Both the position numbers and the translations under genes were made by a program. The notes beneath the pieces were generated by a model that was not told the origin of the DNA, made no database searches, and saw only the letters and a program-made list of their open reading frames with translations. Positions 13,048 to 47,317 of a stretch of DNA of 64,000 bases are shown here, in pieces. The stretch comes from Lytechinus pictus (taxonomy: Eukaryota). Within the stretch, counting starts at the first letter, position 1; every line of letters starts with the position of its first letter. The DNA lies in assembly GCF_037042905.1 (NCBI RefSeq), contig NC_087258.1, positions 20,832,001 through 20,896,000 on the forward strand, written 5' to 3'.

Positions 13048-13064
13048 ACTACTACTACTACTTA

Positions 13065-13100
<36 letters not shown>

Positions 13101-14025: not shown

Positions 14026-14104
14026 TTAATGATATTTGTTATTTTCACCTTAATTCAATATTTCCAAATTCGTTGTTTTTATTTATCACACTTTCAATTT
14101 GTAG

Positions 14105-15352: not shown

Positions 15353-18300
15353 CAAGCCAACGTTGGCTCCACGTTGGAAACTTGAAAGTCGTTGGACGTT
15401 GGGAAAACTTGATGGATTAACGTTGAATCGACGTTGGAAACTAGTTTGATGGAAAGATGATGGACAATCAACAATGACACGACGTTGGCAACGTTGGAAA
15501 CTTGTTAGTCGGAGAGTTGTTGGACAGTCGACAATGTCACAACGTTGGAAACACGTTTGATTGGATAGTTGTTGAACAGCCAGCAAAGGCACAACGTTGG
15601 CAACGTTGGAAACTAGTTCGCTGGAAAGTTGTTGAACAACCGACAATGGCACAACGTTGACAAAGTTGGAAACTAGTTTGTTGGAGATTTGTTGGACGGT
15701 CGACAATGGCACAACGTTGGAGACTAGTAAGTTGGAGAGTTGTTGGACAGTCGACAATGTCACAACGTTGGAGACACGTTTGATTGGAAAGTTGTTGACA
15801 GCCAGCAAAGACACAACGTTGGCAACGTTGGAAACTAGTTCGCTGGAAAGTTGTTGAACAATCAACAATGACACGACGTTGGCAACGTTGGAAACTTGTT
15901 AGTTGGAGAGTTGTTGGACAGTCGACAATGGCACAACGATGGAAATTAGTAGGTTGGAGATTAGTTGGATAGTCAACGATGACACAAGGTTGGCAGCGTT
16001 GGAAACTAGTTCGATGGAAAGTTGTTGAACAACCAACTATGGCACAATTAACGTTGTCAAAGCTAGAAACTAGTTCGATGGAGATTTGTTGGATAGTCGA
16101 CGATGGCACAACGTTGGAAACTGGTAGATTGGAGATTAGTTAGATAGTATACAATGACACAACGTTGATAAAGCTGGAAACTAGTTAGATGGAAAGTTGT
16201 TGAACAACTGACACTGGCACAACGTTGGAAACTGGTAGATTGGAGATCAGTAGGATAGTCGACGATGACACAACGTTGGCAACGTTGGAAAGTTGTTGAA
16301 CAACAGACAATGGCACAACATTGGAAACTAGTGTGTTGGAGATTTGTTGGACAGCCAACAACGTCACAACGTTGGAAACGCGTGTTTGATTGGATAGGTG
16401 TTGAACAGCCAACAAAGGCACAGCGTTGACTACGTCGGAAACTAGTTCGATGGAGAGTTGCTGAACAACCGACAAAGGAACAACGTTGGAAACTATTTTC
16501 TTGGAGATTTGTTGGACAGTCGACAATGGCACAACGTTGACAAAGTTGGAAACTAGTTTGATGGAGAGTTGTTGAACAACGGACAATGGCACAACGTGGA
16601 CAGCGTAATTGGAATAGTTTATTGGACAGTTAACATTGACACAATGTTGGAAACTATAGTTTGTTGGATATTTGTTTGACAGTCAACATAATATCCCGGC
16701 ATAATATACACAGTGTTGAGAACGTTAGAAACTGGTTCATTGGAGAATTGATAATTGATAAAGTTGGCGGAGTACAGCAAGTCTGCATATGCCGACTTAA
16801 CCCAAGACAAGACAAGACTATACTGGCATAGTTTCCAATGGGGCCAAGGGGGGGGGGGTCGATAAAGTAAGTTTGCTTGTCTATCCATGTCACCCTTGGT
16901 ATCCCCCAGCAATAAGGGGAAAAGAAATCGAGAGAGAAGGAAAATAATGGGAAGGGAAAGAGGAACTAAAACTAAGTCTAAGGGGAAAACAAAAATAAAG
17001 ATGGGGTAGAATAGAGAGGCTGCATGCACCTGGGGATGCAAATGTGTCGATTAATATAGAAAATAAAGAAGAAAAACAAGAAAAAAATGTAGTTCAAGAC
17101 CAGAATTTCCAGAAACGCCCTCGTCGATCCTTTGCAGCTGGCAAGGCCTTTCACAGTAAGTACGAGATATGTCATAGGCCTACCGTCACATAACTAGAAG
17201 AAATTGAAGAAGGAAATACAAGCATCAAATGTGCCTATTTAAAAATACCATACTATTCTGATGCGCAGAATTAGTCGCGACGTCGGACTCCTTCTGTCAT
17301 GTCTGTGTAGTCTGCTTCCTTCAATTTTGAACTTGAAGAATCTGGCAGAATTTGGACTGGATAGTGGATATAGATAAGTAAATTCCAGAATATCTAGTGA
17401 TCTGGAACAGTACTTATAAGCTGTATATTTAGGACCTACAATCTACAGTTGAATTTTCTTTGTACTTGCAGATAATCGGTAACTGCAACCATTGATCCCC
17501 TCCGAAAGATCACGGAGTCAGCTTCTGTGTGCGTACAGTCCGACGCAAGTATATTTGTGTACCGTAAGTAGTAGTAAAGTAGTACTTAACACCAGTCACT
17601 GCACAGTATAACATACTAATTAACCTCGTAATTAGCTTGTGTGAGTGACTAATACTAACCTCGCAATACGTGTGAGTGGGAACGAGTATGCGATACCAAT
17701 GGCAAGGCAACAGTCATTGGATGATTTTCAAAATTCAAGTACAGTGTTGAAATCTGATATCTGGTGTTGGTGTAACCCACTCCTAGTACCAATGAGGTCC
17801 AACATTACATGTATGGACCTCATAGGCGACATCAGTAGTATTTTTGGTTAGAAATCTCTGAGAACAGGATATTTAGGCAATTATATCACAAGTACAAGCT
17901 CTATTCCTTTCTCTTATTTAAATTATAATTTTATAGTGTAAATGCATCGTTAGCAACAACAAAAAATGAAAGAAATGAAGGGGAACTTACATTTTCACGG
18001 CTTTTTCCTGATTTTCTGGGCAGCTGCTCTTCTCTTCTGACTCGCGATCGAAGCTGATATGAAGATCACGTGATTCGCGTTCTCGTCAGCTGATCGGTTG
18101 GTTATTCTTTTTGTCAGACGTTAATAATATATATTTTATAATGCTAGCATTCATCGCTAATTTAGGTGAAAGAGATTGAAGTTAAACAGCGCCAGGTCGG
18201 AATCATAATTATTTTGGAAGAGTGTATTTATACACTCGATCTCATACCTGACGTAGACGGCGCTATTCAACAAATGCACAATCTTCAATATAAAAAATAA

Positions 18301-25800: not shown

Positions 25801-26963
25801 AACAACTCTTAAAATTTCATAACTTTGATATTGTTTGTCCGATATGTTCAAAATTTCACCTATCAACTTGTCTGATTTTCCTTTCACCTCTTAAAGCAAG
25901 TTTTTATTTGGGTTGGATTCCCCTTTAAATCATCGTGGATGATTGAATGATAAAATGCTTTCTTTTTAACCGTCTTGAAGACAATTTCCTGCATATTTTT
26001 TTTTCGACAATTATGTGATCTCCTCCAAGGGGAAGATGCTAACCGCTTATTACCATTTTATTCGAAAAATAAAATATTTGCTGGTAAAAATGGTCTTTTT
26101 GTATAGGTATTGTTTGACAATAACTAGGTATTGTTTGACAATAACTTGTTTGACAAGTATACTGTTCTGATTTTCTTTGTTTTAAGAATGTTTATAAGAC
26201 ATCTTAAGAACCAGTTTATTTTTCTTCCTTGAATTCATCATAAGTCCCTCTGAAAAGGAATTGAAGCAATGTAATAGTACTTAATGAACAGGTGGAGATA
26301 TGAATATATAATCTACATTAATTTGCCAATATATGCGTGTAAATATAAACTTGATCTCATTTATTGTATACACGATATTGCATATAGAAATGAATTGTAA
26401 ACGGTGCAAAGTATAATTACAAATCTTACATTATGTTTATATCATGGTGAGAGGCTTTCTACGAATTATTAGAGAACATTCATACAGATAGATTTATTAC
26501 GCCAACATTATAGTATTAAAGTAAAGAGAAATCTCTTCTGCTGATAGATTTCCACCATTCTGTAAAATATAGATTTTTTTGTTACTTAAATCCAATATCG
26601 CAAATACAATCGATACAGCCGCAAATAATTTATATAAAATAAAACATTTTCCCTGATTGTTTCATTCACTTTAATATTCAGGCCCAGTTTTATACAGTAT
26701 AAGGAAGAGGTAGCATAGTTGTACAATAGTAGTTATGTAGTAGTACACTCTTAAAAATATTGGGCAAAATTTTACCCAAAATTTACCCAACATGAGGGCA
26801 GTTATGAGTCCAACCAACTTTTGGGTAAACTTTGCCCTTTTCGTAATTTACCCACTTTAGGGCAAACTTAAATGCCCATCTAATTACCCATCTTAAGATT
26901 ACCCAACCATATTACCCAACATAGTTTACCCAACTATTACCATACTATTGGGTATAAATATAA

Positions 26964-27203
26964 AGACTGGGTAATTGAGTTGGGCAAATCATTTACCCAA
27001 CGAATTGACCAGGAATATTGCCCAATTATTACCCACCTAGGAAATAGACTGGGTAATTGAGTTGGGCAAATCATTTACCCAACGAATTGACCAGGAATAT
27101 TGCCCAATTATTACCCACCTAGGAAATAGACTGGGTAATTGAGTTGGGTAAATCATTTACCCAACGAATTGACCAGGAATATTGCCCAATTATTACCCAC
27201 CTA
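26964..27203. repeat. ~82-bp tandem repeat x3 in the left subterminal region of the EnSpm element
   Basis: AGACTGGGTAATTGAGTTGGGCAAATCATTTACCCAACGAATTGACC... repeated three times. Confidence 0.9.
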
Positions 27204-28899
27204 GTACATGGAAAAGCAATAATTGGGCAAAACGGTTGGTCAATATTCATTACCCAATTCCATTGCCCAGTTAGACATTGCCCATACATTTACCCAACCT
27301 CCTGTTTTACCAACCTTTACCCAACTCTTACCCAGCATGAGGGTTCATATGGATCCAAGGCCACGTTGGGCAAAAACAAAATGGGTAAAAATATCAAAAG
27401 AAACTACTGGGCAATCTTTCCTCTTTTTTTACTCAGCTTGATGTACATTTTACTCAGCATTGAATCCAATGCATGTAACTGACAGTAAATGGGCAATATG
27501 GGGGATCCAAGAAGGATAAACTGCAAGGGCAAAGTACAGCATGTTATATACGGACAATATAACTACAAATATAACAGATGAGAACAATTGCCTGTTATGA
27601 ACAGAGTGTATATATATTCTTCAACAAAACAAAAATACAATAAACAACAAAATAAATATAACAATTAAAGTTTGATGTATAATGGCATCATATACCTTTA
27701 TAAATAATTTGTATACTGACTGAAGAAGATCGGACTAGAAATCAGAGAAGTCAGGAAAACAACTACATGTACAACTTGTAAATTAATGTTTAATTACAGT
27801 GCAATATCATACCTATCCTTATTTGTAGGCCTTATTACTGGAAATGATTATGCAATCACACACGATTCTGATACAAAATGGTTTGAGTTCTTTTCATATA
27901 CTTATCAATTCCAAACAAAATCAAAACATGCATTGGTTTATTTAATACTCGTACTTATTGAAAGATATAACAACAACAAAGTGAAGTATAACGATTAAAG
28001 CGTACTCCTGTAAACACATCTCCATCTTGTGAGAATGTAGTGCATATAATTATAAAAAATACATAATGAGCATCAGTGCAAGAAAAAAAAATGGCTGTGT
28101 ACAATTTTGATTTGTTGCATATCTTTTTCAACATGTATACCTATTTTTGTAATTCAACACTTTTAAAAATATGCAATCCAAACCCTCTAATTTTTCACCA
28201 ACCTTAAATAAAACAAAATAATTTTCTTTCTCTTCAAAAGTGCTGCGACGTTCTGAATATCGACATAACAAAAATCCGAAAGAGCTTGATATAGTTGTAC
28301 ATCACAACACATTGACTGAAATAGTGCATGTGGAAATAGATCAGACTACAAATCAGGAAAGTCAAGAAAACAACTACAACTTGTAAATTAATGTTTAATT
28401 ATACGTGTAATATTATACCTATTCTTATTTGTAGGCATTATTTCTGGAAATGATTATGCAATTGTACACACAATTCTGATACATGAGATAATGGCTTCAG
28501 ATCTGTTCATAATTTATCTATTCCAAACACCATAAACACATGATATCAATGAAAAAATACAGAATTTAAATGTTTGCTGTACAAGGAATATTCAAATTTG
28601 ATATTCTTTTATCGATATTCATCTTAAAACACATTTTTTTGGTTTAAATCCTTGCCGAAATGATTGTTTAATGATATTTTTTCCCATACAACTTAAAGTA
28701 GCTATGCGATGCAAACTAAAACATAGGAAATTATACATCACTATAGAGCTGGGCTAATAGATTAACATTATAAAAGTGTGAATCCTGAGGTGGGTTTTTC
28801 AATCGATGTTTCACTTGGATCTCTAATTTGCCATCAAATTAGTTGGGCTCCCAAAACTTTAGAAGGGAAAAGTTTGTGCGATATCATATAGCTTTAGCT

Positions 28900-31800
28900 T
28901 CAACTGATGTCCTTAGTTGCAAGAAATGCCCTCAGATCACGAATTTTAGGTGTAATATTGGCACCTACATCACCCATACCATACACGACACTCTGCAAGA
29001 AATGCCAGACTTGGCAACATTGCCGCTGGTAGTCAACATCGAATACAAAAGTACTCTTGAACGCTACATCTACAGCAGCAAGCAGGCTTGCTGTCTCGAT
29101 GGCGTGCCTCTCGACTATCACGTATGTCTGTGCAGGATTGATCTTGCTCCCCCTGGCCATTATGAACGGTTGGGAGCGCTGCTGGCCGTCGATCGACTTC
29201 ATGAATTCCTCAATGTTCACCACCTCCTGTTTTGCAATAGAAACAGAGAAAAAAAATTCCCCCTGTACTTATGATTGTTTCAATTGTTATCTTTTTAGGA
29301 TTACATGCAATTAGTAGGCTCATAGCGAACTTTGCTCGGAAAAAATATGTAGGTTTCCCTGCATACCATGATCTAATGTGATACAATCAATTTTGTTAAT
29401 TTCTTTCAATTTAACTTTTAGTGAAGGGACAATTACATGAGCATCAAATAACATAATTTCAAACTCCTCACGCGGAGCAACATACTACTTTAACTTGATG
29501 AAAGTTCTAAATATACAAACATTTAAAATCCCAATAATAATACTGCTGCTTCTGCCAGATATAACTGTTGTTCTTTGATAATAAAAACAAAATGCCTAAG
29601 TACATTATATGGCTGGCTGCACGAAACCAAAGTTTTCTAAAAAATCATATTGCAGCGATAATATGCATGGCGGTTTCTGTAATCTTCTCTGCCAATACCG
29701 AATCAAAACACTCACATTTGCACCTTTATACAGCAAGAACTAAGATACAGGAAAATTATGTGGGGCTTTACAGTGACTTCACCCTCTATTATACAATTAA
29801 CAGCAAAATACAAGTATTTGAACCCTAACCTTCAGTAATCTTTACTAAGCAAATGTTGATATTAAACGAGACGTTGCACAATCACACACAATTAGGCACA
29901 GAGCATGAACACCACAAAGGATTCTGCAACAAATGACACAGCACAGCAACAAAAAGCCATGCCCATTCTAGTGACATTTGGATTTGACAGTATGGCTTTG
30001 TGTTGTGCTGTGATATTTGTTGAGTCACCCCTTGTGGTGTTCATTGCTAACTAAACTGTGTTTTTTTGTGTGTGCAAAATCTGCAACCTCTTCTATGTTG
30101 ACATGTTATATTAGTAGAGATTACTGAATGACATATAGCTGCATGTGTTTAAATGTGTTTTTAAATTGAGGATTTCTAAACAACTCTGGTAAGTTTCTTT
30201 TGATGCTCATTATACTGCCACACCTGTGAAAGTTCATTAGGTCAATTAGCCTCTCACTTTGACCAAGTGATAACGGGCAAAACAAAATTATGCATGATCA
30301 GACTATTTCTTCACCGTATAAAGTATACGCCTGTTTCCATCTGCAACCTATACAACTTGCATGGTTTGTATTAGAGTATAGCTGTTGATTTAATTTACGA
30401 CATACTTACGGGCTGAACATCTATGAAAGAGTCGAGCGTCTCCTGCACAGTGCACACACCACCCTTAGCTTTTCTTCCACGTAGAATAGCCGGTAGGAGG
30501 ACCAAGGCAAGGTTTGTCTTCTCTTCTGTGAAGGGGAATTTAAAAAAAAAGGAATGTTTCAGTTAGCCAACATTTATAACTGTGTATAGACGGACTGATG
30601 AACATAAATCTGACACTGTAGGGCTTTACAGAATGGCAGCATGCTGGCCAATTACTTGCACAGATGTTACAATCCTTAAAAAAGCCCGCACTGCATGGGA
30701 ACTGGACATCAGCATACCGGACATGAACACTTGTTAGCCTTGATATCTTATCTAAAGAATCACATGAAACATAATTTTGCAAATTCAAAGGCAAATCATG
30801 TGCTACTATTATTATTGACTATAACCCCCAAACATCATGCCTTAGTGTCATGAAACAAGATCAATGCATATAAAATCTCACCAGGGTTCAGCCTCTCTGC
30901 ATCTATTCCATCAAGATGTAGTGCTGCCTTCCACAGTACGGAACGGTTGGCGTATTGGATAATCTGCTCCTTATACTGTGGCCACTTTATGTACAAGCCG
31001 TTCTCTTTGCCTTCATGGAATGTCTTGAAGTCTTGCTCAACCTGTGAGATACAACAATAAAAATTAGTCATCTTTTACTAATTCCTGATGATCAAGGTTT
31101 TTTTTAAAAACATTCCATGGGTAGAAGGCTAAGAGAATATACTTGTTCAAATTTGAGAACAGTAGTTTTTCCACAAGAACTGAACAGATCTTTTTATTTT
31201 CTTCGAGTTAAAAAACTGGCCACCACGCACCATGAAAAAAACAAAGAAAATTAAAGAAATCTCTTACGTCTTGTTTCCAAAACCCTGGTCCGTTTGCTCC
31301 AAAATTTGATCGGAGTAATTTTCACGCCAAAGAGATTCTACCAATAAATTGAGGTGGGTGTGCAAATCAGGCTTTAAAAGTATACAAAGGATGTCAAATT
31401 CCAAGAGTACAGAGGTTTTCTACAAAAATGCATTTGCTTCTCGCCAGACATATGTTATTTAATTTAATTTCATCGCCAAAACTGAGGTAGGGATAAGAAA
31501 CAATTCAGAATTATGTAGCTGTCAGGAACTTAAAAGCACAAACAAAATGTATCTTCTTAAAACAATTGAAAAAGCTCTTTGTATCACTAAACAAAATGAT
31601 GATGAAATTGATTTGTATTATCTTCTGCAGAAAAAAATATTCCATTTAACACAATTCAGTATAATTCTTTAGGGTGCTCTTAGGTAGAATATTAAAACCT
31701 TGTCAAAAAGTCAGGTCTTTACCATTTCTGCTTGCATCATGTGAGGATACTCTGCCAGGATGGTGCTGATATTGTCCCGATGAGCTTTTATCCACTTCTG

Positions 31801-34800
31801 TCGGTGCATTACTGTTTCCTTCATGTAGGCAACAACCTGTTCTCGAGGCTGCTTGTTATGCTTGAGCCATTCAATTTTAGCTGCAGTATCTTTATCAACT
31901 TCTGGAGGCCCCTGATCCTCTGCCGAAGGTTCTGGAGTAAACATGCAATATACAGGAAACATAATTGCATGACATTCTTGATTTTCTTACACAGGCGTCT
32001 GCTACCTTCAGCTGCTTCTTATGACTTTTTAAAGTCATTATAAAATATACTGTCTACCATAAAAAAATAAAAGTATTTGTTTAATAATCTCACAATGCAA
32101 ATATAAATTTCTATAAATAAAAACAATTCCACAGCATTAAGTCAAATGAATTAGTTTTGTTCAACATGTATATATGCATTTAGAAATGGAGAAGAATGTA
32201 TACTGTAACCAAGAATTTATGTGAATTGGCTCTCCTTTGACCTCATAAAAATCAAACCCAAAATCTTATCAGGTGACTGACTGGCGTAACTATTTAAAAG
32301 TACAGACTAGCTGTTATTTAAAGCAAGCAGGAGACAATTAACCAAATGTCTTTAAAATCAACCTATTTTATATTATTGATACCTGATGACTGAGTTTCGG
32401 TTGGCATTGGTTTGACGATCTGCTTTTCTGCTGAGGAAGCAACATTTTCCGCACTTTCAGTCTTCTTCAGGCGACCAGTCCTCTTTCTCAAATACCTTAG
32501 GTGCTCCTCGAGGTATCCCGTTGCTGGACGCCCCTTGGCTCCTTGGCAGTACCAGGCTTCCTTCAAATGGCACAACACGGTATTGTTATTATATATCCTT
32601 CAGGCAAATGACAATCTATTTGGTAGTCACTACATATGATTGACATATAAAGCAATTAAAGGAAACCAAAACCCCAGCCAACAAATTGCTTAAATTCAGA
32701 CAAATTAAAGAATAATATCAATAATATCTTCAAGGAATTGGATGAACTTCAACATGTATGACTTTTCCAAAGTTTTAATCACCATCAATTTGTTTTCTGG
32801 TAGATTGACTAAAGATGTGACCTTTGATGTTTTGGGGATGCTTGCAGAGCTATTCTGACAGATACTGACAGAATTTGTTTATTATTTTCTTTATAATTTT
32901 CTGTGAGCGGGCAGTGCGTCGTGTATACATGTGTAAGTTGGGCATTAGAGAGACATTTTACACTAGCTTAAACAGATTACACTGATTATTAACAAACCCT
33001 TATAATTGCTTGCCAACTAAATACAATATCACTGTATGGATACTTATGAACCAAGCAATTGTCATACTTGCATTCTAAATTAATACTTACATAGCCATAT
33101 GGAGAGTCAGGATCACGCAAGCATGGAAAAGCTGTAATTATGGCACTAGCCATAGCGGCCTTCACTCCAGAAGAAGGTCTGTAAAGCAATAATGTTTTTT
33201 TTTTAAACTGCATTGACTTGCTCATCCAACATCCAGAAACGTACAATTTCACGAAAAGTTGACTTTTACATAACATTAGCATAATCTACCAGAATTATTA
33301 GGGGTCAATGCCTGTGCATGCTCCCTCCCCCCCCCCCCCAATACCCTGAAGTAGGTTTTGTATCGTTTAAACAAAAGCTAACCTAAACTAAGGTTTGTAT
33401 CATGGCGTATAATTGACATGGAACCCTCAGTAAAAAGGATTTTTATTGAGTAAATACATGGCACATTTTGCAATTTCATTAAAAAGGATAACACAAACTT
33501 TCAATATAATTCAAAATATAATGCTAATATATAATTTTAATTTGTGTTGTGGTTATTGCTAAATGAAACTATGAAGACGTGCGTGCAAACAGATGCAAAT
33601 TATTTACACATATAGGCACAGTGTGCGACAATGAATTCAAAATGGCCGCCAACTTGTCTAATGCGACCACCTGTATACAGCGACCCCTTTTCGCTGGTCC
33701 TTTGAGTTGTCGCTATAGACAGGTTTGACTGTAACAAAATTATTATATCCATCGGATAGGGTGTCTTTTCCAATGAAAAACGATACCAAGAATAGTAATT
33801 TTGGTTGTGTAGTTTTTGTTTTAGTGCGCTTTGAGTGACACCATGTCAGGTTCCCTTTTTGGTCATTTTTTTACCAAGTCAGTGTGTAATAAATTGCACT
33901 TACTGCCCATTATAGCGTCGCGAACAACGAGCAATACGCGCTTTTGTTAGTGTGCATTCAGCTGTGTGCCGAGAGAATGGGCACAGTTGCTCGATGATAT
34001 GACAGACAGAAAGTGTGATTTATTAGGCAGATCGAGACTTGGTAAAAAATGGCAAAAATGGGAACCTGACATGGTCTCACTAAAGACGTCCTACAATATT
34101 GTTTTTCATTTGAAAGGACACTCTATCCGGCGGACCCAATCATTTTGTTACTATATTTTGGGAAGTGCCCCGTTCCGTTTTTTGGGGGGCCACCCTGTAT
34201 ATAGGGCATCTACCAATGAAGTTTGGTAATAAACAGATGCACGGTTGGAAGGTTATTCAAATTTTTGTAAGCGTCAAGGACAGACGGACAGACAGACAGA
34301 TGGACGCAATTTGGATCCCTTAGTCTCCCTCCACCTATGGTGGGCTCGACAAAAACAAGGAAAAAGAATGAAACACACAAATAAAATATTTAATACAAAT
34401 ATCATGCGCCTAAAAAGACAAACAGACAATGTATAAAACAGAAAAGGAAGAAAACAATGTATTACTTTTCTCCATGATGCTGCATCACGTACTGCGTGCA
34501 GATGTCCACAAGAATCCTTCTGTTGGGTTTGCTGCAAAACTTGTGCTTGTCAATATCCTTTATAATTCTGGGGCCACCCTTGACAGAAGATAGGATGGGC
34601 CTCAAAAACTGAAAGTAAATGCAAATTAACTAAATTATTTGTTTCTATCCAAAAGTATCAATTTATGTATTATCTTCAAAGATATGCAAGTTAGTTGTGA
34701 TCCCTTGTGATAGCATGAACTGCACACATATGCATACGTCCAAACGAATTCAGATGCATACACTGGCCTGAGCCTAAATAGATCAGGTCTGAATGATTAA

Positions 34801-37800
34801 AAATTATAACAAAGCAACTAGGTAAATATGCATTCCAGTTGAAATAACGTGTAATTCTGGACAAAAACCTACAATGATCTGATATTTTGGCCCTATTCAA
34901 ATATTAGGCAAATTAGGCACAAAATGAGATATGTAACAAGTAAATTATTATAGCAAATAATACTCAACGCACATATGTGACCGTCTTTGTCCCTTTCCGT
35001 TGTGGTGCTATGTGATCATCTGCCTGCCAGTCATGTTGGTCCGAAGAAGTGTCTGCACTGTCTGACAGTTCAAAACCCTCACCCAAACTCACTGTAGATG
35101 CTGGGGATGTAGCAGGTTGTTTGAACTACAAAGGAGTAAGAGAATAGGAGGTGGGGGTCATCAAATATATAATGGATTGTTAGCAAAGAGAATACCAATT
35201 CATCCAGGTTGACATAATATTATCAGATAATATTATCAGATAATGATATACAGTACTGCCGAACATTGTGTGCAAAATTTTCTGCATGATAAGTAAATTT
35301 TGACACCTGAACTTTGCTATAAGTGACTAAAAATTAAAATATGGGCAACGAGACACATAATTGGACCACTGATAAATGTTCAGTTAGCTTCATGCTTGTT
35401 TGAGGTCGTGGAATTACTTCAGTCAACTAATTCTGAGTGGTCTGGGGTAGTACAGTTTTGGTACAGAGGGCGCATGACATTTGTACTCTGTTGTTCGCGC
35501 ACAATTACCCTTTGTGAACTGCTGTACCGTATCGATCATGAATACGCCAAAGCTCGGACAAGCATGACATGTATATGACAAATTTTATTTTCTTTTACAA
35601 AAGTAAAAGAATTTGAAAGTTAAAACACATTTTAGCATACCTACAAAAAGTTGAAACGCACTGCTATGTACCGTGTGTCCTCTTCAAAATGCACTTTATG
35701 AATCTGTGTAGCCGTCAGAGGATGGTAGTCAAATAATTTGCATGGCTTCACAACTGCAATCTTTGACTGCTTGTCGCCATCTTCGTGTACAGCATATGCT
35801 TGAAAGTGCGAACTGAAGTTAACCGTCTCAAACATTTTCAGAACAAGAAGCACCTCACTGTTCATCAGAAGGACATGCAGAACCTTTCCAAATGTAGGTC
35901 CATCTTCTGTCCATTGGGTGATTACACATGTTCCTGCCCTGTACTCATATCCATGTATCACTGCCATTTTTGATGTCGATACAATGATATCCTTGTCACA
36001 TGTTAACACATCAGATATTTTGTTCCCGAGGGCAAGCCATGACAGGTTGATATCCAGCTGCTGGGAAAGTTCCAAGTCTTTGCACTGTATTGACTGTTCT
36101 GACAGGAATGCATAGCACCTTGCCATTTGATGTTTTTCCGAGAGTGTCTTGGCAATATTCTTGAAATTACATGAAGAATTAGCAATCGCCTTGAAGACTT
36201 TATGCTTCCCTTCAAATCGAATTGAAGAGTACTGACACAGAGGACCCAGGGCTCTCAGAACCCTAGGATAATGTGTGAGGAAATGCTGCTTTGGTGTGAG
36301 ATTTCTCTCAGGAAACAATCTCAAGAACTGTCTATGATGCTCACAAATGAGAGCCTTTAGTGCAAATGTGGCTGCTTTGCTTATACTTGGAGCCATCACT
36401 GTCTTCAGTATATTAATGAGCTGGAGATACAATTCCCATTCTTCAGAGTCTTCTGGGACCTTATCCCCTATAATCAAGGGGAGATGATATGCCAAACACA
36501 TCATTTGGGCTGCACTCTGCCCACTGGGGCCACTTGGATTAGTAATTACAGAGAGTTTGACTGGACTTGGACGATTCTTTCTGTTTGCGAATCCATAGTT
36601 GTAGGACTGAATTCTTGCATTCAATTCCTCTAGAGTGAAACATCTTTCTTCAATAAGTCTGCCCAAGACAAGATACATTTCTAGTGGTATTATGGCTTCG
36701 GCAAAGTCATGCATCACATCAACGCAGAGGTTAAGTGTCACATGATAGTTGTCTAAATCATTCAGAATGCTCCTCCTGCTAATACCGGTGTCTGACAATG
36801 GTTTACCAATATCCTCCTCATAGCTTTCTCTTGTCCTTAAGAGATCCTTATCCTCCGCTGTTCGTGACTGAAGCACAGCACGATGCCCCTTGCAAAGTCT
36901 ACAGTAGTAGTTTGCACTGAAACTTGATGTGTATCCAAGCATTGAATTGATTCCCAAATTATCCCCAGTCACTTGAAACAACACTGGTTTCACCTTGACT
37001 GTGCGACCATCATGGTTGATGTGTAATCCATTGTCTGACAAATCCTTCAAATCTGAACATACGGTTTTCAAAATGCTGTCCATTCCATACTTGGTGCAAG
37101 ACTTTGTTGTAGCAAGTGCTACCAACAAAATGTTATCAAGTCTGGCCTGGTACACAGGTGGGAGTGAAAGTACACTCATATAAAATGCACAGATTTTGTG
37201 CTTTCCTCTCTTTGATCCAAGTGGATTGGCAGTTTCGAAGTCGTCAGAGTAGAGTAACAACGGAATAACAAGTGACTCTTCATGTGAGTATTTCTCTTTA
37301 AAGTGATCTCCATCACGATATGATTCCAAAACCTGATCTCCAGACTCTTGGGCAGAATGAATAGCTTCCAGAACACCTGGCTGCTCCAAATGTTGTTTGA
37401 GTGACTGTGAGACTGGAATGTATTGAAATGTTTCTTCGTGACGAACTTGCAGAGATGTCCCACTAGACGAATCGATAGTTGCTTTGAAATAATGCCCAAG
37501 GATTTTCTCTTCAGGAGAAATGAAAGCACCACATTTTTTGAAATATGCTCTCTTCTGATGTTCAGTTTTCAAATCACTGAAAGGATTTGATGTTTCATTC
37601 AACAGTTGCTCCAATTCTACCTTTGCGGCTTCATCTGTAACATTTTCTGCAACTTTGGTAATCTTTTCTTGTACATGATCTACAAAATTATCAAAAATTT
37701 CCTCCACATTTTCGAGAACTTCTTCCACAAATGACGTAGGCACACGAGATGAATTTCTTAATTTTGCTATCAACAGAGCAGCTTCGTTGGCATGTGGTGT

Positions 37801-39621
37801 TTTTTCCCCCTTATCTCCTCCTTCAATCACAATCTCTTCGGTGTCCTGTTCTTCACTGTGATGCGTGGCTTCTTCTTCATAGAGTGTTTGATAATCTACA
37901 TTTGTTTGTCCATCATTATTTCTTTCTCGTGAGTGCTTAGATATCAAATGTTTTTTGAACCCACCTAATGTGTTGAAATGGCTTCTACACTGCTTTTGAA
38001 AACATGTTACATGCACTCTGCGCCCATAGCGAATTTGATGGGAATGTTTAAAATGAAAGAACAGGGATTGGATTCCTCCAAAAGATTTCAAGCATTTAAA
38101 GCATTTAAAAGACATACGTGTACCTCTTCTCTCCATCCTTTGGTAAATTTGATTCTTTTTCCAATCTTTGGAATTAGCTCCTTGATGCTATCTTCATTGA
38201 GGTCTGGTAGAAGATGGATGTCAATATCATTGTCTGGAGGCAAGAAAATGAGAAAAAAAGAAAACAAAAAGAAGTTGTATGAGAGGGGAAATATATAAAT
38301 GTCTAAATTGATAAGCTAGTCTTACTTACCAATAACTTATGTGAAATATTTATCATCTGATTAATTATTAAAGAGTGATATTCAAATTTCTGTGAACAAT
38401 CAAAAGTATTCCAGCTATACAGCGTGTCCCATTTTACCTTTGACCAAAGCATATCATTGAGGTCAGTATAGGGCATCTACCAATCAAGTTTGGTTACAAA
38501 CAGATGCAGGGTTGGAAAGTTATTGACCCTCTTACCCCCAAAACTTCACATTGACCCTCATTTGACCTTTGACCTACATATGTGACCTTTGATCCCAGCA
38601 TATCATAAAGGCCAATATAGGGCATCTACCAATCATGTTTGGTTACAAACAGATCCACGGTTGGAAAGTTATTGACCCTAATAGACTCTTACCCAAAAAC
38701 TTCACTTTGACCTTTGACCCCAGCATATACCTAGTGCATGGTCATGCTGCATGGTATGGGCTAGACCGACGGTTGTTCCGCTGAGATTATACATCTGGCT
38801 CCTCTGTAGTCCTGTACATAGACTGAAGTACGGCATATGGGGTAGTGTGTGGAACTGGAAGGAATGGATCGGTTCGGCCGGACCGCGAGACGAATGAAGA
38901 TGCGAGTTTTTTAACTCTTTACGTCTTCATATATCCACTTTGGCTGCAATATTACATTCCATCTTATTTTCAAAAATTTCGCTATTGCAATTAAATTTAA
39001 AGAATTTTATGTAGGCCTAGGGCCTAAGTAAGAAATAGGTCTAAACTGTTAGGCCTAACTTGTTAGATTCTATACAAAATTCTTATGTCTGATTTATGGA
39101 TCAGACAATTAACTTAACTTTTGTTAGATCTAACGTTAGGCCTAACCTTAAATAAAGAAAAACGGGGGAGAACGTTTTTGTACCAAAAGTGGTACAAAAT
39201 CGGCTCAATCTCACCCCGTTGTGCGAGCCGGACGGGTTACCGTCTGTGTATGGCGAATGATGTTGTCAAATGACAAAGAATGACCCATACCAGACAAAGA
39301 TGAAAGAATGACCCATACCAGACCAGACTGTTATTTCTGTCTAACGTTAGGTATAGCCTAGGCTTGCCCCGGGAACCTCGACACGACGTCTTTAGTGTTC
39401 GGGCTGCCGCAGTAAAGCCTAGGCTATAGTACTAGTAGGCATGCATACTAGCGCATAGGCCTAGGCCTACTGTTAAAAAGTGATAGCGAATAATAGCTAT
39501 GACTGACCTTTGAACGTGTTCAACAGCTCAGGAACGCCCCATTTTTTTGTAACAAGGCCTCTAGGTCCAGGGCAGGATTGTCCATGTCCACATCATCGTC
39601 CAGATCATATTCAAGGTCCAT
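28900..39621 (-). CDS. Transposon-borne 10-exon SAM-domain (SAMD3-like) accessory protein, ~534 aa; 1-nt frameshift in exon 1 as assembled
   Basis: Exons with GT-AG boundaries and consistent phases: 39621-39508, 38233-38118 (alternative end 38124), 35125-34973, 34608-34466, 33178-33091, 32560-32383, 31931-31723, 31041-30882, 30525-30410, 29226-28900. SAM-like WGVPELLNTFK-DNDIDIHLLPDLNEDSIKELIPKIGKRIKF; AIITAFPCLRDP..YGYEAW; C-terminal AVDVAFKSTFVFDVDY..VWHFLQSVVY. Confidence 0.8.
33630..34200. mobile_element. Tc1/mariner-like MITE remnants nested in an intron of the SAM gene
   Basis: Ends ...GACAGGTTTGACTG-TA (~33733) and ...GGCCACCCTG-TA (~34199); internal inverted repeat 33840-33880 vs 34035-34075. 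Confidence 0.5.
35641..38136 (-). CDS. EnSpm/CMC-family DDE transposase (831 aa, or 824 aa from ATG 38115), intronless, N-terminal C2H2 zinc fingers
   Basis: C..C..H..H fingers; LYSDDFETANPLGSKRGKHK, VTGDNLG..LG..FS...CRLC, DVMHD..E, TPKQHFLTHYP and RFEGKHK motifs; uninterrupted ORF lying between matching TIRs. Confidence 0.92.
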   Translation of the reverse strand: MERRGTRMSFKCFKCLKSFGGIQSLFFHFKHSHQIRYGRRVHVTCFQKQCRSHFNTLGGFKKHLISKHSRERNNDGQTNVDYQTLYEEEATHHSEEQDTEEIVIEGGDKGEKTPHANEAALLIAKLRNSSRVPTSFVEEVLENVEEIFDNFVDHVQEKITKVAENVTDEAAKVELEQLLNETSNPFSDLKTEHQKRAYFKKCGAFISPEEKILGHYFKATIDSSSGTSLQVRHEETFQYIPVSQSLKQHLEQPGVLEAIHSAQESGDQVLESYRDGDHFKEKYSHEESLVIPLLLYSDDFETANPLGSKRGKHKICAFYMSVLSLPPVYQARLDNILLVALATTKSCTKYGMDSILKTVCSDLKDLSDNGLHINHDGRTVKVKPVLFQVTGDNLGINSMLGYTSSFSANYYCRLCKGHRAVLQSRTAEDKDLLRTRESYEEDIGKPLSDTGISRRSILNDLDNYHVTLNLCVDVMHDFAEAIIPLEMYLVLGRLIEERCFTLEELNARIQSYNYGFANRKNRPSPVKLSVITNPSGPSGQSAAQMMCLAYHLPLIIGDKVPEDSEEWELYLQLINILKTVMAPSISKAATFALKALICEHHRQFLRLFPERNLTPKQHFLTHYPRVLRALGPLCQYSSIRFEGKHKVFKAIANSSCNFKNIAKTLSEKHQMARCYAFLSEQSIQCKDLELSQQLDINLSWLALGNKISDVLTCDKDIIVSTSKMAVIHGYEYRAGTCVITQWTEDGPTFGKVLHVLLMNSEVLLVLKMFETVNFSSHFQAYAVHEDGDKQSKIAVVKPCKLFDYHPLTATQIHKVHFEEDTRYIAVRFNFL

Positions 39622-41143
39622 GATATCATATGTAATCAGTTTCTAACTTCCAGCGGATGATTATGATAATGATGATCCCCTTTTAATCTGGCCGACTCGA
39701 TACGTACCGGGTACGTGCATGCGAGTGATATTGTGTGCGACATCGCCTCGTGCATATATATGCCATCATATGGGCGTAACATGCCCAGTAATGGTGAAAT
39801 AAATGCTCATGATGGGCGAAACGTGGTTTCAGCTGGCCATCGTGCACCAGTATTGCAACGGTACGTAGCTAGCTAGCGCTAGCGCGCGCAACGTGACATA
39901 ACTGTGTTCGCGCCGATATGCTGTTGTTGTTATTTGTTTTTAATTACCGGTATTTGCATTCAGTAGTGAATTTTTGAGCCATAAGTATTTTGCGCCCCTT
40001 TGCTAATTGCGCCAAAATTATGCCTATACTGTACATACTGGGTAAACACCAATGGATGAAATTGGGCATTATACCTACAAGTACAAGTACACCTGGTAAA
40101 ACTTCCCCAACACTGGGCGACATAAGTGGTTCCATTGTGCAGCCCGCACCCGTCGACGGGAGGGGGGGGGGGGGGTCTGAATTTCTTTTTTTGTGGGATG
40201 TGTTTTGCAAGAATGCCTATAGCAAAGTAGGGGGCCGAGGATAATCATAATGAGTCGGCAATCTATATGCATGCAGTGACTATAAAACAATACCATATTC
40301 AGGCTATTAACATTATAGTTACCCAGAATCAGGTCGATATTATATATAGGCATGGTTTTTGACACAATGTTGGATTTATGCTTAGGCCTAGCTACTTTCA
40401 AAAGTTGGGAACGAATATACCCAATGTGGTAAGCCTTTAGATATGCCCAATTTTCATTTACCCAGTGCTTAATTGTTATAAACTCATTACGTGTGGGCAT
40501 GCCTTACGTTTTGTTATGTTGGGTATATAGTTACCCACATAGCTGTAGGTTAATAATGGCCAATTTGTTTTTACCCGTTGGTATTTGGTGTTTACCCAGT
40601 ATATAGGCATTATGTTTTGTTTCCATGATGAGTAAATGCACTGTAGTTGGGGAAGTTTGACCCAGTTGTAGGTATATTTGTATTTTCCCAGTGCTGATTG
40701 CCCAGTATGTAGGCATTTTTCTTTTGCCCTATGTAGGGTAAATGCGTGTAGTAAAAAGGCTGGGAAAATTTTACCCAACCTTTGCCCAATTTCCATTTAC
40801 CCAGTGGAGTTTACCCAATATTTTTAAGAGTGTAGAAGCAATTGCAACGTTGATTTGTACCAACTTTATAGCATGAAAATATTGAAAATATGTTATCAAT
40901 AGGCTGACTGATTTAAATCTGTAAAATTAATATTTGTAAAAACTTAAATCCGTTTAACATTATCAATACATTTTAATGTTAGATCATTTCATTCGCTATA
41001 ACGTAGACTTCCATGTGTAGTAGAGAAGCTCTATCAAAACAAAAGAGAACAAATGAAAACAAATGGATTTACGATTGCTTTTATGAGAGATGAAAAGTAG
41101 CTTCTTTATAAAAGTGAACCCAGCAAACGAGGGGAAGTCTACC

Positions 41144-41275
41144 GGGGCCCCGTATCACAAAGCGTAGCAATGATCATAGAACATTTTTCTTCGATTGATT
41201 GCATTGACTATAATGTACAATCAATGGTGAAAATCGAGCGTGCGATTAATTGCTAACCTTTGTGTTACGAGACCT
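41144..41275. mobile_element. Small MITE (Harbinger-like); duplicate at ~42573-42704
   Basis: Imperfect TIR GGGGCCCCGTATCACAAAG / CTTTGTGTTACGAGACCT. Confidence 0.55.
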
Positions 41276-41699
41276 AGGAGTTGCTCTCTAAAAGCTACCA
41301 ATTAAGAACATTAACACCAACATAGATCGAGCACATAATTATGGAGGTTTTTTTTTTTTTTTTTTTTTTTTTAAATGAACCTATGTGTTTCTCAGTTTTA
41401 ATTAAACTCTGAATATCATAATTTTGAATCGAGTCTGTTCAAACTTTGAATGCGAATTAAAAGGGTGGGAGAGAGGGAGATAGTGAGAGAAAGAGAGGGA
41501 GAGGGAAAGGGAGAGACATGGGGAGTAGAAGGGGGGGGGGGGGGTAAAGGGAGGAAGAGAGAGAGGGGGGGTGAATATGGGAGGAGTGGCTCAGGGGTGC
41601 ATGGGATTAAACCAGAGCTAGAATCAAAGAGAAGAGGATAAGGAGAGAAATCTTTAGATCTATCACAAATAATAACTGATTATTTTCTATTAACGTCCC

Positions 41700-41762
41700 C
41701 CAACTGTCCCCCAACCGTGTCGATGATCTCTGCCTCAAATGTCTCCATCAATGGTTGCGTAG
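41700..41762 (+). pseudogene. ~60-bp relic of TRIM exon 1 (second copy 43126-43188)
   Basis: CCAACCGTGTCGATGATCTCTGCCTCAAATGTCTCCATCAATGGTTGCGTAG aligns to 10702-10752. Confidence 0.8.
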
Positions 41763-44700
41763 GGTTAGATGAGAGGAAGATAGACAGAAAAAAAAATCTT
41801 TAGAAATATCACAAATCAAACATGAATGAATAATTGCGGCCCCACAATCTGAAACCATGTCTCTAAGCAATTAAGAATTGAAGTTAATATGAAAAGGAAA
41901 GTATTTAAGAACTATATAGTCCTCTTCAAGGGGGGGGGGGGGGTGCTAGGGAACTGGAATTTAATATTTAAACGTTGCCTGAAATGAGGGGATTAGGCAA
42001 CGTGAGGTGGGGGGGGGGGGGGGTTACTGGTTGGTGAATGAATAAAGGTGATAATGATATCCCTTGGGAAAGTAGTTGGGGAAGTTTGACCCAGTTGTAG
42101 GTATATTTGTATTTTCCCAGTGCTGATTGCCCAGTATGTAGGCATTTTTCTTTTGCCCTATGTAGGGTAAATGCGTGTAGTAAAAAGGCTGGGAAAATTT
42201 TACCCAACCTTTGCCCAATTTCCATTTACCCAGTGGAGTTTACCCAATATTTTTAAGAGTGTAGAAGCAATTGCAACGTTGATTTGTACCAACTTTATAG
42301 CATGAAAATATTGAAAATATGTTATCAATAGGCTGACTGATTTAAATCTGTAAAATTAATATTTGTAAAAACTTAAATCCGTTTAACATTATCAATACAT
42401 TTTAATGTTAGATCATTTCATTCGCTATAACGTAGACTTCCATGTGTAGTAGAGAAGCTCTATCAAAACAAAAGAGAACAAATGAAAACAAATGGATTTA
42501 CGATTGCTTTTATGAGAGATGAAAAGTAGCTTCTTTATAAAAGTGAACCCAGCAAACGAGGGGAAGTCTACCGGGGCCCCGTATCACAAAGCGTAGCAAT
42601 GATCATAGAACATTTTTCTTCGATTGATTGCATTGACTATAATGTACAATCAATGGTGAAAATCGAGCGTGCGATTAATTGCTAACCTTTGTGTTACGAG
42701 ACCTAGGAGTTGCTCTCTAAAAGCTACCAATTAAGAACATTAACACCAACATAGATCGAGCACATAATTATGGAGGTTTTTTTTTTTTTTTTTTTTTTTT
42801 TAAATGAACCTATGTGTTTCTCAGTTTTAATTAAACTCTGAATATCATAATTTTGAATCGAGTCTGTTCAAACTTTGAATGCGAATTAAAAGGGTGGGAG
42901 AGAGGGAGATAGTGAGAGAAAGAGAGGGAGAGGGAAAGGGAGAGACATGGGGAGTAGAAGGGGGGGGGGTAAAGGGAGGAAGAGAGAGAGGGGGGGGTGA
43001 ATATGGGAGGAGTGGCTCAGGGGTGCATGGGATTAAACCAGAGCTAGAATCAAAGAGAAGAGGATAAGGAGAGAAATCTTTAGATCTATCACAAATAATA
43101 ACTGATTATTTTCTATTAACGTCCCCCAACTGTCCCCCAACCGTGTCGATGATCTCTGCCTCAAATGTCTCCATCAATGGTTGCGTAGGGTTAGATGAGA
43201 GGAAGATAGACAGAAAAAAAAATCTTTAGAAATATCACAAATCAAACATGAATGAATAATTGCGGCCCCACAATCTGAAACCATGTCTCTAAGCAATTAA
43301 GAATTGAAGTTAATATGAAAAGGAAAGTATTTAAGAACTATATAGTCCTCTTCAAGGGGGGGGGGTGCTAGGGAACTGGAATTTAATATTTAAACGTTGC
43401 CTGAAATGAGGGGATTAGGCAACGTGAGGTGGGGGGGGGGGTTACTGGTTGGTGAATGAATAAAGGTGATAATGATATCCCTTGGGATCTGCTGCCGTAG
43501 CAAGAAAAGGGGGCCGAAAGAAATTACCCGTCCTTCCACTATATATGTGACTATACCCTACGGCCTATTAATCTACAAGTAACTCCCTTTAAAAAAATAT
43601 GAGGAAAACATTACTAAGCTCCTACATATCACGCTATGTGCTTTAAAGACTGATTAGATTATAGCCTTCTTTGAATTTGTCATTTTTAATAGGTAAATGA
43701 TTCTTTAAATCTACCCTTTTTCTCATTGAAACTATTAAAGAACCTTTCAACCAAAACAATCATTTTAAAAGATCTTCTTTTCCAGGTATTATCACGTGAC
43801 CAATTTTCCAGATCACATTCTATATAGAAATATTGTTTGATTTGCGCCAATACTCTTTAAACAAATCAGTCAAATTGACTAGACCAGTAGTCAGCTGGGT
43901 GCAACTGATATGGCAATCACTGATAGTCACGTTTTTAGAGTGTGTTGGGACGGATCTGAGTATTTATGAATTTGGTGGAGAAAATGTTATGTTTATCTTT
44001 AAAAACAAAGACAAATCAAACACACCAATCAATCAGACTAGGAAAAAAAAGGGGGAAAAAAACTAAACAAGCAACAAGCACGGCGACTCAAACACCCCAA
44101 CTTTTTAGCTAAACGTGATCATTCAAGAAAAATAAGCACTTGACAAAATAATTACAGTTCGATGACTTCGATTTATAATTAAAAATGATTCGAATGTTTT
44201 CTTTGACAAATTTACAACTCAAAGAAATGCCTGTATGATATATCCAATAATTAAAGACAGTAAATAAAGTTATGTCGAATATTCAAAGGAATTATAACAG
44301 AGCAATTGATTATGTAATAAAATAGGATATAAACTCCAAAATAGGCCAAAGCGTTGAGAAGTTGACAGTTCGATCTACTTGGCGAATTGAGTTGTCCGAC
44401 CTGAACTTGGAATGGTGAAATACGTAGCTAGGCCTGTCGTATACAACGGAGAGTGGAAAACCGGTCTCGATGAATCATCGATCGATATCATGCAGGACAA
44501 AAATTCGTCTATGGTGAGGGTCTCAGTGGAACCCGATAAATATCAGGAAAAAGAAGTAAAAAGTCAGCTAAAACAGGAGTCCATTTCTCCTTTACAAAAT
44601 GAAGAGCCCAGACAGCATCAGTGAGGTATACGCTGTTGGGAAGCTAAGCCGACGATCTCGGGGAGATATTGGTTCAAATCCCCATAGAAAAAGATGTAAC

Positions 44701-45230: not shown

Positions 45231-47317
45231 TTAACAAACTGCAATATAACGTTCTGGAAATCGAACATATCGTCCAGATCGAGTTTTTCGGATAGGTGCA
45301 GTGGGTGTACTCGTGTGCGAACTCTGCACTGCACTCTTTTCCACAGAGCTTGGAATTCTGCCTTTAACGATACTTTTCGATTTTGGTAGGCTTTCTTCCA
45401 GACTTTCTTGATTTTCAACGTATGCCACTTTCAAACGATCTATGCTAATCTGATCGCGTTTGCCATTAATGTCAAGCGTGAAAAATCGGTCTTTGCGCTT
45501 TAGCACCTTATAAGGTCCTTTGTATGGCTGTTGTAGCGGTTTGCGCACGGAATCTACCCTAACAAACACATACGAGCACGAAAAAAGATCTCTAGGAACA
45601 TGCGTCGATCCTTGCTTCGCTCTAGTAGGGATAAGAGTACATGACGCCATGTGTCTACGTAACCGGGAAATGTAGTCACTCGGATCTACATCAGTTCGCT
45701 CAGCCGTAACGAACTGTCCGGGTTGTCCCGAAAACTAGCTCTGCTGATGAGCATGACAAATCTGCTTTAATGGTAGAACGGATACCCAGGAGTGTCAAAG
45801 GTAATTGTTCACTCAATCGAGAAGGATCTTCGTAAGCCTTCAAGGCAGCCTTGAGTTGACGGTGAAATCTCTCTACCATCCCATTTGCCGCAGGATGATA
45901 GGCGGTTGTTCGGATGCGGGTTGTACCTAACAACTTAGTCAGTTCCGCGAAAAGGCGTGATCAAATTGCCTACCACGATCGGTGGTGACAGAGCTGGGTG
46001 CACCAAACATGGCAACCCACCTTTCTACGAAGGTTTTGGCAACTGTTTCTGCGCGGATATCGGTTATCGGGATGGCTTCCGGCCATCTGGTAAAACGGTC
46101 TATACACGTAAGTAGATATGTATAACCATTCGAATGGGGCAACGGACCAACGAGATCCAGATGAACGTGTGCGAAACGCGCGTCTGGGATACTAAAAGTC
46201 CCTTGTGGGGCTTTGTACATGTCTATTAGTCTTTGACCTCTGACACGGTAGACATTCTCGGGCCCATTTGCACACATCCTTATTAATCCCGGGCCATACG
46301 TAACGAGCGGTAATCGCACGCTGTGTTGCTCGGACTCCTGGATGAGAGAGTCCATGGATAGCATTGAAAACTGCCCTCCTATGAATCTTCGGGACGAAAG
46401 GACGGGTGAGTCCGTGAGAAGTATCGCATACGATTGAGCCACCAGTGGTGAGCCTTGGTACTTTTTTGAGCACCAGACTAGAATTGATCTCGGAATTGAG
46501 ATACGCTTGCAATTCTGAATCGGTTTCTTGTGCTTCCGCAATATCCGTGAAATCTATCCGAGATTCGGTATGCAAGGCGCTGATATCGGGTCGAGATAGG
46601 TGTCAGCCACCACATTGTCTTGACCTTTGACATATCTGATGTCTGTGGTGAACTGCGATATGAAATCCAAATGCCGGATTTCGCGGGGGCTATGACGATC
46701 TGGCTTGGCGTTTAATGCGTATGTTAAAGGTTTATGGTCGGTATAAACGCAGAAAGGACGACCTTCTAGCATGTACCGAAAATTTTTAATTGCCAAGTAT
46801 TAATGGCCAGCAACTCTCGCCCAAATGCGCTATACCTTGTTTCAGCAGGTAGCAATTTCCGCGAGAAGAATGCAATCGGCTCCCATGCATTGTCGTGGAG
46901 TTGCTGAATAACTCCACCAATAGCACGGTCTGATGCGTCGACCATCAAACTCAGAGGATAATCTGAATTTGGATAGGCCAATACCGTAATCTGCGCTAGT
47001 TTCTCTTTGACTTCAACGAAAGCGGCCGTACAAGCAGGCGACCAATCTAGCGGTTTCTTGGATCGCTTCTTACGATTGCGCAGGAGGTCGGTGAGAGGCA
47101 TGAGGATATGCGCGCAGTTAGGAATAAATCTACGGTAAAAGTTCACTAAGCCGAGAAATCCTCGCAACTGCTTCAGTGTTGTGGGGACACTGCAGTTCCG
47201 AATCGCATCCACTTTGTCCGGGAGTGGACTGACTCCATCGCGGTTGATACGGTGACCTAGAAATTCTAGCTCCGATCGGCCAAAAACGCACTTGTTTGGG
47301 TTGACGACAACACCATT
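45231..47317 (-). mobile_element. Decayed Ty3/Gypsy pol (end of RT, RNase H, integrase), CsRn1-like
   Basis: [96 protein letters not shown]; at least 4 frameshifts; no LTR recognised. Confidence 0.92.

Follow-up and report, generated by a model that had tools for sequence, protein, structure and literature searches.

We analyzed a 64,000-nt stretch of the sea urchin Lytechinus pictus genome (RefSeq assembly GCF_037042905.1, contig NC_087258.1, positions 20,832,001 to 20,896,000 of the forward strand), here called the window, which holds a DNA transposon whose transposase gene lies inside an intron of a second gene encoding a SAM-domain protein. We read it as an autonomous two-gene transposon of the CMC (CACTA/Mirage/Chapaev-like) type, most likely transcribed as a single unit whose intron 2 has a choice of two 5′ splice sites, one on each side of the transposase open reading frame (ORF), and we put the probability of this reading at roughly 0.55. 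An En/Spm-like choice between these two splice sites is plausible by analogy, because the nesting is conserved, the transposase ATG lies near the first donor, further donors follow the transposase stop codon, and RefSeq lists the products as isoforms.

Transposase ORF nested in a SAM-protein gene

The SAM-protein gene has 10 exons on the minus strand, and an uninterrupted, intact transposase ORF takes up the 5′ five-sixths of its intron 2, on the same strand and within the same pair of terminal inverted repeats (TIRs). A preliminary description of this stretch, made from its letters, had proposed that the transposase sits in an intron of the element's own SAM gene, and this arrangement stands and extends to other echinoderms and a teleost; exon 2, which it had taken for a SAM-gene exon, does encode part of the SAM domain. 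Its coordinates are also correct, including the ATG within GTATGT, the TAG followed by GTATGC and the acceptor at 35126/35125. The features around the two junctions are listed below, with positions counted from the first letter of the window and a slash marking each splice junction; P numbers designate proteins (P0096 is the SAM protein of the sea cucumber A. japonicus, P0099 that of the sea urchin S. purpuratus, and P0100 a RefSeq model from L. pictus) and L numbers designate related loci and contigs.

39508–39621, minus strand: SAM exon 1, coding part (ATG 39621, donor GT 39507), first half of the SAM domain, matching the N-termini of P0096 and P0099
38124–38233, minus strand: SAM exon 2, second half of the SAM domain
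38118–38123, minus strand: proximal 5′ splice site GTACAC (GAG/GTACAC), at a conserved position and used in P0100
38112–38117, minus strand: second in-frame donor candidate GTATGT, holding the transposase ATG, specific to this copy
35641–38115, minus strand: CMC-like transposase ORF of 824 aa, ended by TAG, whose product has a C2H2 zinc finger at its N-terminus
35635–35640, minus strand: distal 5′ splice-site candidate GTATGC, immediately after the stop codon
35584–35589, minus strand: AATAAA hexamer, 52 nt past the stop, not conserved
34973–35125, minus strand: SAM exon 3, acceptor TTTGTAG/TTC

The ATG at 38115–38113 opens the sequence MSFKC and 824 codons that end at TAG 35643–35641 (831 codons if counted from an in-frame ATG at 38136). 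The protein weakly matches Pfam Transposase_21 (tnp2, PF02992; E = 6e-4, 19.5 bits vs a cut-off of 28.6), as do 7 of the 25 family members, with single members matching DUF4218 or Plavaka, and the family alignment conserves D, D, E and CxxC/H columns. Sea urchins and sea cucumbers, as well as many teleosts and insects, have related stand-alone proteins of 800–870 aa, and a Met lies 1–4 residues ahead of the first zinc-finger Cys in about 20 of 25 homologs, which fits a stand-alone transposase protein. Compared with the 96% identical transposase of the Lytechinus contig L001, which is colinear with 38647–32378 of the window, the ratio of nonsynonymous to synonymous substitution rates is 0.36 (synonymous rate 0.05).

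Three lineages of sea urchins show this nesting, as do two sea cucumbers and a teleost. At the A. japonicus locus L003 a 511-aa gene (7715–17638) surrounds an 828-aa transposase gene (10001–12487), the sea cucumber H. leucospilota (L004) and two S. purpuratus loci (L006 and L008) have the same arrangement, and in the fish Astyanax (L013) a 487-aa SAM gene surrounds an 866-aa transposase. It is extremely improbable that the SAM gene is a host gene into whose intron a transposase-only element inserted by chance, since nothing beyond the nesting itself speaks for such an insertion, the TIR pair and subterminal repeats lie outside both genes, no inverted repeats were found around the ORF alone when these were sought in the window, and the same gene pair recurs in many copies and distant species. 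A related fish element in grass carp (LOC127508052, L005:7537–12439) has a different gene order, in which a distantly related accessory gene lies wholly upstream, its stop 20 nt ahead of the transposase ATG; no SAM exon was found in it.

The exon-2 donor and the transposase start codon

Along the minus strand the end of exon 2 reads ...AAA GGA TGG AGA GAA GAG GTA CAC GTATGT..., with CAC/GTATGT lying 6 nt downstream of GAG/GTACAC, in frame with it and seemingly stronger by consensus. The preliminary description took CAC/GTATGT as the donor and proposed that it overlaps the transposase start codon, an overlap that is not conserved. P0100 (XP_063965226.1, LOC135156591), which maps at 100% identity to nine exons in the window, uses GAG/GTACAC, its sequence '...KGWREE/FKQPATS' corresponding to the junction 38124>35125 and skipping the entire transposase ORF. 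Exon 2 ends at the homologous residue ('GW.EE/') in P0096, in P0099 and in P0104, the product of the spliced Logan mRNA contig L007, and L001, which is 95% identical to the window in this part, has ATATGG in place of GTATGT. The overlap is particular to this copy, and every GTATG donor includes an ATG by construction. Because the donor is 38124/38123, the start codon falls at +9 to +11 of the intron, adjacent to the donor hexamer but outside it.

The transposase ATG nevertheless lies 9–64 nt past the exon-2 donor in all seven independent lineages, and at the loci with the whole intron at hand the remaining intron (204–1407 nt) is always 3′ of the ORF. The exon-2 donor, the distance from the intron start to the A of the ATG and, where present, the strict donor past the transposase stop (defined below) are as follows.

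L. pictus window: exon-2 donor GAG/GTACAC; ATG at +9; TAG/GTATGC 0 nt past the stop
Lytechinus contig L001: ATG at +9; TAG/GTATGC 0 nt past the stop
A. japonicus L003: exon-2 donor GAG/GTAAGC; ATG at +14; CTG/GTATGT 36 nt past the stop
Astyanax L013: exon-2 donor GAG/GTAAGT; ATG at +23
H. leucospilota L004: exon-2 donor GAG/GTAAAT; ATG at +25; ATG/GTACGT 28 nt past the stop
S. purpuratus L008: exon-2 donor GAG/GTAGGC; ATG at +32; AAG/GTACGT 10 nt past the stop
S. purpuratus L006: exon-2 donor AAG/GTTAGT; ATG at +39
Logan contig L010: ATG at +64

The frame of the transposase relative to the SAM exon is −1 in the window, as the preliminary description had it, and in L001 and L006, +1 in L003, L008 and L013, and 0 with an open path only in L004 and P0011, a metagenomic protein in which SAM exon 2 runs in frame into the transposase. 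These last two cases, together with predicted proteins in which gene predictors joined the two parts (P0003 and P0004), are what could suggest a SAM–transposase fusion made by reading through the exon-2 donor (intron retention), with ribosomal frameshifting where the frames differ. Since the frame relation varies, neither fusion nor a programmed frameshift is a conserved feature, and with no evident slippery site and a conserved Met directly ahead of the zinc finger, we consider such a fusion very unlikely.

Donors past the transposase stop codon

At the other end of the ORF, we sought a strict donor motif (GTAYGY or GTRAG) within 40 nt past the stop and found one in four of the seven lineages, where the chance expectation is about 0.1 per locus (binomial P about 0.003). 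Two annotated proteins use such donors. The A. japonicus isoform X3 (P0122) starts with MQKKKEL at L003:12503, 15 nt past the transposase stop, and splices from 12523/12524 to exon 3 at 12692 (CTG/GTATGT), and the S. purpuratus isoform X2 (P0165) starts inside the final 150 nt of the transposase ORF, in a different frame, and splices from L008:4376/4377 to exon 3 at 5102 (AAG/GTACGT). Because both use donors soon after the stop, the candidate junction 35641>35125 has annotated positional counterparts. The stop-codon donor of the preliminary description is upheld to this extent; its exact overlap with the stop codon is confined to the two Lytechinus copies.

The same overlap bears on a further proposal of that description, namely that the ORF may be excised precisely in two steps through a recursive AG/GT splice site at the stop codon. 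Both L001 and the window do show an acceptor followed directly by a donor (TTTTTGTAG/GTATGC), but this juxtaposition is not conserved, the donor elsewhere lying 10–36 nt past the stop; moreover, the intron is just 3 kb and the two-step product would be the same as that of a direct splice, making recursive splicing highly improbable here. If the distal donor were used, the transposase and exon-3 frames would coincide in the window and in A. japonicus (L003:12485–12692), split by the stop codon only in the window and by 12 sense codons besides in A. japonicus. As a conserved feature such a frame relation was rejected, as it matches in 2 of 4 cases (not significant), fails in L008 and L004 and may be due to chance; at the 5′ junction no conserved frame relation was found.

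RefSeq isoforms and the case for separate genes

RefSeq treats the nested products as isoforms. The 828-aa A. japonicus transposase is entered as 'isoform X1' (XP_071831683 and XP_071831684), and on the same contig the 511-aa SAM protein is 'X2' (XP_071831685) and a 459-aa protein 'X3' (XP_071831686); a second A. japonicus copy has the same isoform pattern (XP_071823664 to XP_071823667). The consecutive isoform numbering, which we take as grouping by NCBI into one gene, would imply shared splice sites. All RefSeq models in the family (those of A. japonicus, S. purpuratus LOC115927326 X1/X2 and Astyanax LOC111195806) are unnamed automatic predictions. Another S. purpuratus model, isoform X1 of LOC115926207 (L006:10964–21383; 895 aa, identical at at least five loci), links residues 1–420 encoded by an intact transposase ORF to accessory exons 3–10 through an internal donor, CAG/GTAGTT (12223/12224), and possibly represents a truncated-transposase fusion.

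The isoform numbering speaks against two separate nested transcription units, in which a transposase promoter would lie in intron 1 or exon 2, transcription would end at an intronic poly(A) site, the SAM gene would splice over the transposase, and the closeness of the ORF to the donor would reflect compaction instead of regulation. Such an arrangement, which we regard as somewhat unlikely, would agree with the conserved stand-alone N-terminus opened by the ATG, with the Logan contig L009 that starts 31 nt ahead of its transposase ATG, with the separate entries of the two A. japonicus products in the sequence collection and with the AATAAA in the window, which the preliminary description had placed about 50 nt past the stop and proposed as a site of intronic polyadenylation. 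The hexamer is indeed there (35589–35584), but it is not conserved in L001, and neither of the sea cucumbers (L003, L004) has an AATAAA or ATTAAA in the stretch from the stop to exon 3, so that their transposase mRNAs must continue into downstream exons. As judged from these sequences, this favors the distal-donor route over intronic polyadenylation. Separate units would also sit poorly with RefSeq isoforms that use distal donors right past the stop, and nesting alone leaves unexplained why the ORF lies strictly at the 5′ edge of the intron in every lineage.

A model of donor choice and the points against it

In a single transcription unit with alternative donors, both donors would join the one acceptor at 35126/35125. 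The proximal donor 38124/38123 (or, in this copy, the in-frame 38118/38117) would remove the transposase ORF and give the SAM-protein mRNA, and the distal donor 35641/35640 would retain the ORF as a 2.5-kb extension of exon 2, so that intron 2 may serve as a splicing switch at this locus. The resulting long mRNA would carry first a short SAM-domain ORF, which stops 16–42 nt past the start of the retained segment, then the transposase ORF and lastly the remaining exons, which lack the SAM domain. Translation of the transposase from its own ATG would depend on leaky scanning, on reinitiation or on a start site closer to that ATG; by any of these routes its output would be low relative to that of the SAM protein. 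As the upstream exons encode a SAM domain of the polymerizing type, the transposase mRNA would also give a free SAM peptide, and the ATG may be close to the splice site to let ribosomes that have ended this peptide start again at the transposase. Like TnpA in En/Spm, the SAM protein may bind the subterminal TGGG(T/C)AA repeats, and transcription from a shared promoter would leave the ratio of the two proteins to donor choice. That all of these parts hold together, with donor choice setting the transposase dose across the echinoderm, fish and arthropod family, a free SAM peptide, reinitiation and a TnpA-like SAM protein, seems to us unlikely.

Several observations weigh against a single unit with donor choice. 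With coding exons upstream, the transposase ATG stands behind a strong upstream ATG, and translation from the long mRNA would be awkward. SAM exon 1 of this copy is frameshifted (see below), so the copy possibly makes no SAM protein and is perhaps not a working example. Near the stop, no strict distal donor was found in L006, L010 or the fish L013, where L006 has a weaker CAG/GTACAA 39 nt past the stop and L010 and L013 have nothing clear. The only pointer to shared 5′ exons in the transposase mRNAs is the naming and numbering of the isoforms. Our transcript searches found no RNA for this locus or species; the Logan contigs with the nearest transposases, L001 and L002 (Lytechinus) and L011 and L012 (A. 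japonicus), are unspliced and, being colinear with the genome, uninformative on splicing.

Further searches found no spliced upstream exons in Logan contigs L009 and L010, and none of the proteins retrieved with the L. pictus SAM protein as query was a transcript-derived member of this subfamily. From a relative, L007 is a spliced 2.8-kb SAM-protein mRNA contig; its 3′ untranslated region (L007:2211–2449) repeats the last coding exon in diverged form.

Relation to known elements

In maize En/Spm, alternative splicing of a single unit produces both the tnpA and the tnpD transcripts (Masson et al. 1989, as cited in PMC1636069). The Lytechinus element shares with it the CAC-type inverted repeats, the short subterminal repeats and the position of the transposase ORFs in an intron of a same-strand accessory gene. 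Its long mRNA would likewise consist of the transposase ORF followed by the accessory ORF, as the Spm tnpD mRNA has tandem ORFs (PMC1636069). There are also clear differences. Exon 1 of En/Spm is an untranslated leader, whereas the two upstream exons of the Lytechinus element encode a SAM domain; En/Spm chooses between acceptors, whereas the Lytechinus element would choose between two donors flanking the ORF; no resemblance to TnpA is seen in the Lytechinus accessory protein (no Pfam match), and the Lytechinus transposase is one uninterrupted ORF. The strategy of En/Spm is to make plentiful accessory protein and scarce transposase from one promoter. If one pre-mRNA yields both proteins here as well, this strategy would reach a widespread animal family, and by a second, independently built solution with alternative donors around the ORF and coding upstream exons.

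Alternative splicing of an animal CACTA-superfamily element is already known from SmTRC1 of Schistosoma mansoni (DeMarco et al. 2006, PMC1636069), relatives of which were noted there in S. purpuratus, Danio and Aedes, and isoforms of the present family are already modeled by RefSeq. SmTRC1 resembles the Lytechinus element in being an animal element with a Transposase_21-like protein and several spliced mRNAs, of which a shorter and more abundant one lacks the transposase domain. Its accessory proteins, however, have no detectable relatives in other animals, whereas echinoderms, fish and arthropods share a conserved SAM accessory protein, and the Lytechinus-type transposase, unlike that of SmTRC1, has a fixed place in the intron. 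The RefSeq family models are closer still, sharing both proteins, their nesting and the end of exon 2, and in A. japonicus and S. purpuratus a donor just past the transposase stop. The study of DeMarco et al. was the only relevant prior art that our literature search found (PMC9004415, also considered, was not relevant), and the search found no description of the SAM accessory protein, of the fixed ORF position at the 5′ edge of intron 2 or of the flanking pair of donors. Donor choice, if true, would give a function to the many genes of urchins, sea cucumbers, fish and insects that are annotated as 'uncharacterized protein isoform X1/X2', and the element is a compact natural system in which to test competition between splice sites and the translation of downstream ORFs.

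The SAM protein and its gene

The AlphaFold model of P0096 (mean predicted local distance difference test score 77) predicts that the N-terminus adopts a five-helix SAM fold akin to polymerizing SAM domains. Residues 1–60 match the SAM domains of BICC1, ANKS3 and tankyrase (Foldseek probability 1.00, target template-modeling score 0.7–0.8, root-mean-square deviation 1.2–2.5 Å), and the Pfam SAM_1 match is weak (E = 0.005). The C-terminal region of about 400 aa gave no Foldseek match in the PDB, and Pfam returned no family besides the weak SAM_1 for the window exons or for the accessory portions of P0003 and P0004, single exons lacking a match because they are too short. A profile search (E ≤ 0.001) gathers 4,471 clusters at 50% identity from echinoderms, including a crinoid, teleosts and arthropods; all inspected members are 'uncharacterized', and ten full-length matches are all unnamed arthropod or sea cucumber proteins. 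Vertebrate genes for SAM-domain proteins without an assigned function, such as SAMD3, might conceivably derive from this accessory protein. Three L. pictus SAM proteins (LOC129283458, LOC129277699 and LOC129273001) share 90%-identity clusters with S. purpuratus proteins (the P0083 and P0099 clusters), a similarity unusual between urchin genera that raises the question of horizontal transfer or strong constraint.

Exons 3–10 (35125–34973 to 29226–28900), which encode the conserved C-terminal region, are separated by introns that are all GT-AG. In exon 1, the frame from ATG 39621 ends at a TGA after 33 codons owing to a run of seven A; eight would mend the frame, and the run could be a disabling mutation or a homopolymer error of sequencing or assembly. 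The frameshift is the reason why P0100 borrows an unrelated N-terminus: this model reads through the exon-2 acceptor, and its first ~120 residues, drawn from a reverse transcriptase/RNase H fragment outside the transposon and from intron sequence, involve 46811–47101 (the fragment) and 45465–45560. Automatic models at such loci, of which LOC135156591 is an example, should be treated with caution as chimeric. The remaining features of the gene are as follows.

39542–39548, minus strand: A7 run shifting the frame in SAM exon 1
34466–34608, minus strand: SAM exon 4
33091–33178, minus strand: SAM exon 5
32383–32560, minus strand: SAM exon 6
31723–31931, minus strand: SAM exon 7
30882–31041, minus strand: SAM exon 8
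30410–30525, minus strand: SAM exon 9
28900–29226, minus strand: SAM exon 10, stop TGA

Ends of the element and repeats in its introns

The element is best classed as a CMC-like DNA transposon, and TIRs beginning CAC(T/A), as in this group, are present at both of its ends. Its outer features are the following.

26746–40832, minus strand: whole transposon, 14,087 bp, both genes on the minus strand
40814–40832, minus strand: 5′ TIR (CACTC...)
26746–26764, plus strand: 3′ TIR
26765–27500: 3′ subterminal repeats, 35 copies of TGGG(T/C)AA, partly in 82-bp tandem units
39900–40813: 5′ subterminal repeats, 10 copies of TGGG(T/C)AA

The 19-nt TIR sequence CACTCTTAAAAATATTGGG is exact (19/19 nt) at 26746 on the plus strand and at 40832 on the minus strand, where 0.01 would be expected by chance in the window, and this one TIR pair, together with the subterminal repeats, surrounds both genes. 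Most TGGG(T/C)AA heptamers of the window (50 of 62) lie just within the element ends or in a duplicated end. Both flanks of the element are TA, which fits a 2-bp target-site duplication but would occur 1 time in 16 by chance, and the 5′ flank lies within a tandem duplication. This 1.43-kb duplication (40643–42069 and 42072–43487, 99.1% identical) takes in the last ~190 bp of the 5′ end of the element and the adjoining flank, with a third TIR copy at 42243–42261, and could be real or an assembly artefact.

Two further features lie within the introns of the SAM gene. One, an insertion in intron 4 (33731–34151), resembles a miniature inverted-repeat transposable element and has long imperfect inverted repeats with arms of 55 and 53 nt; about 640 bp around it (33319–33958) are missing in L001. 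The other, a unit of ~170 bp rich in 'GGTCAAAGGTCA', is found in intron 1 (38430–38730) and again in intron 4 (34197–34360) and is probably a short interspersed or miniature element.

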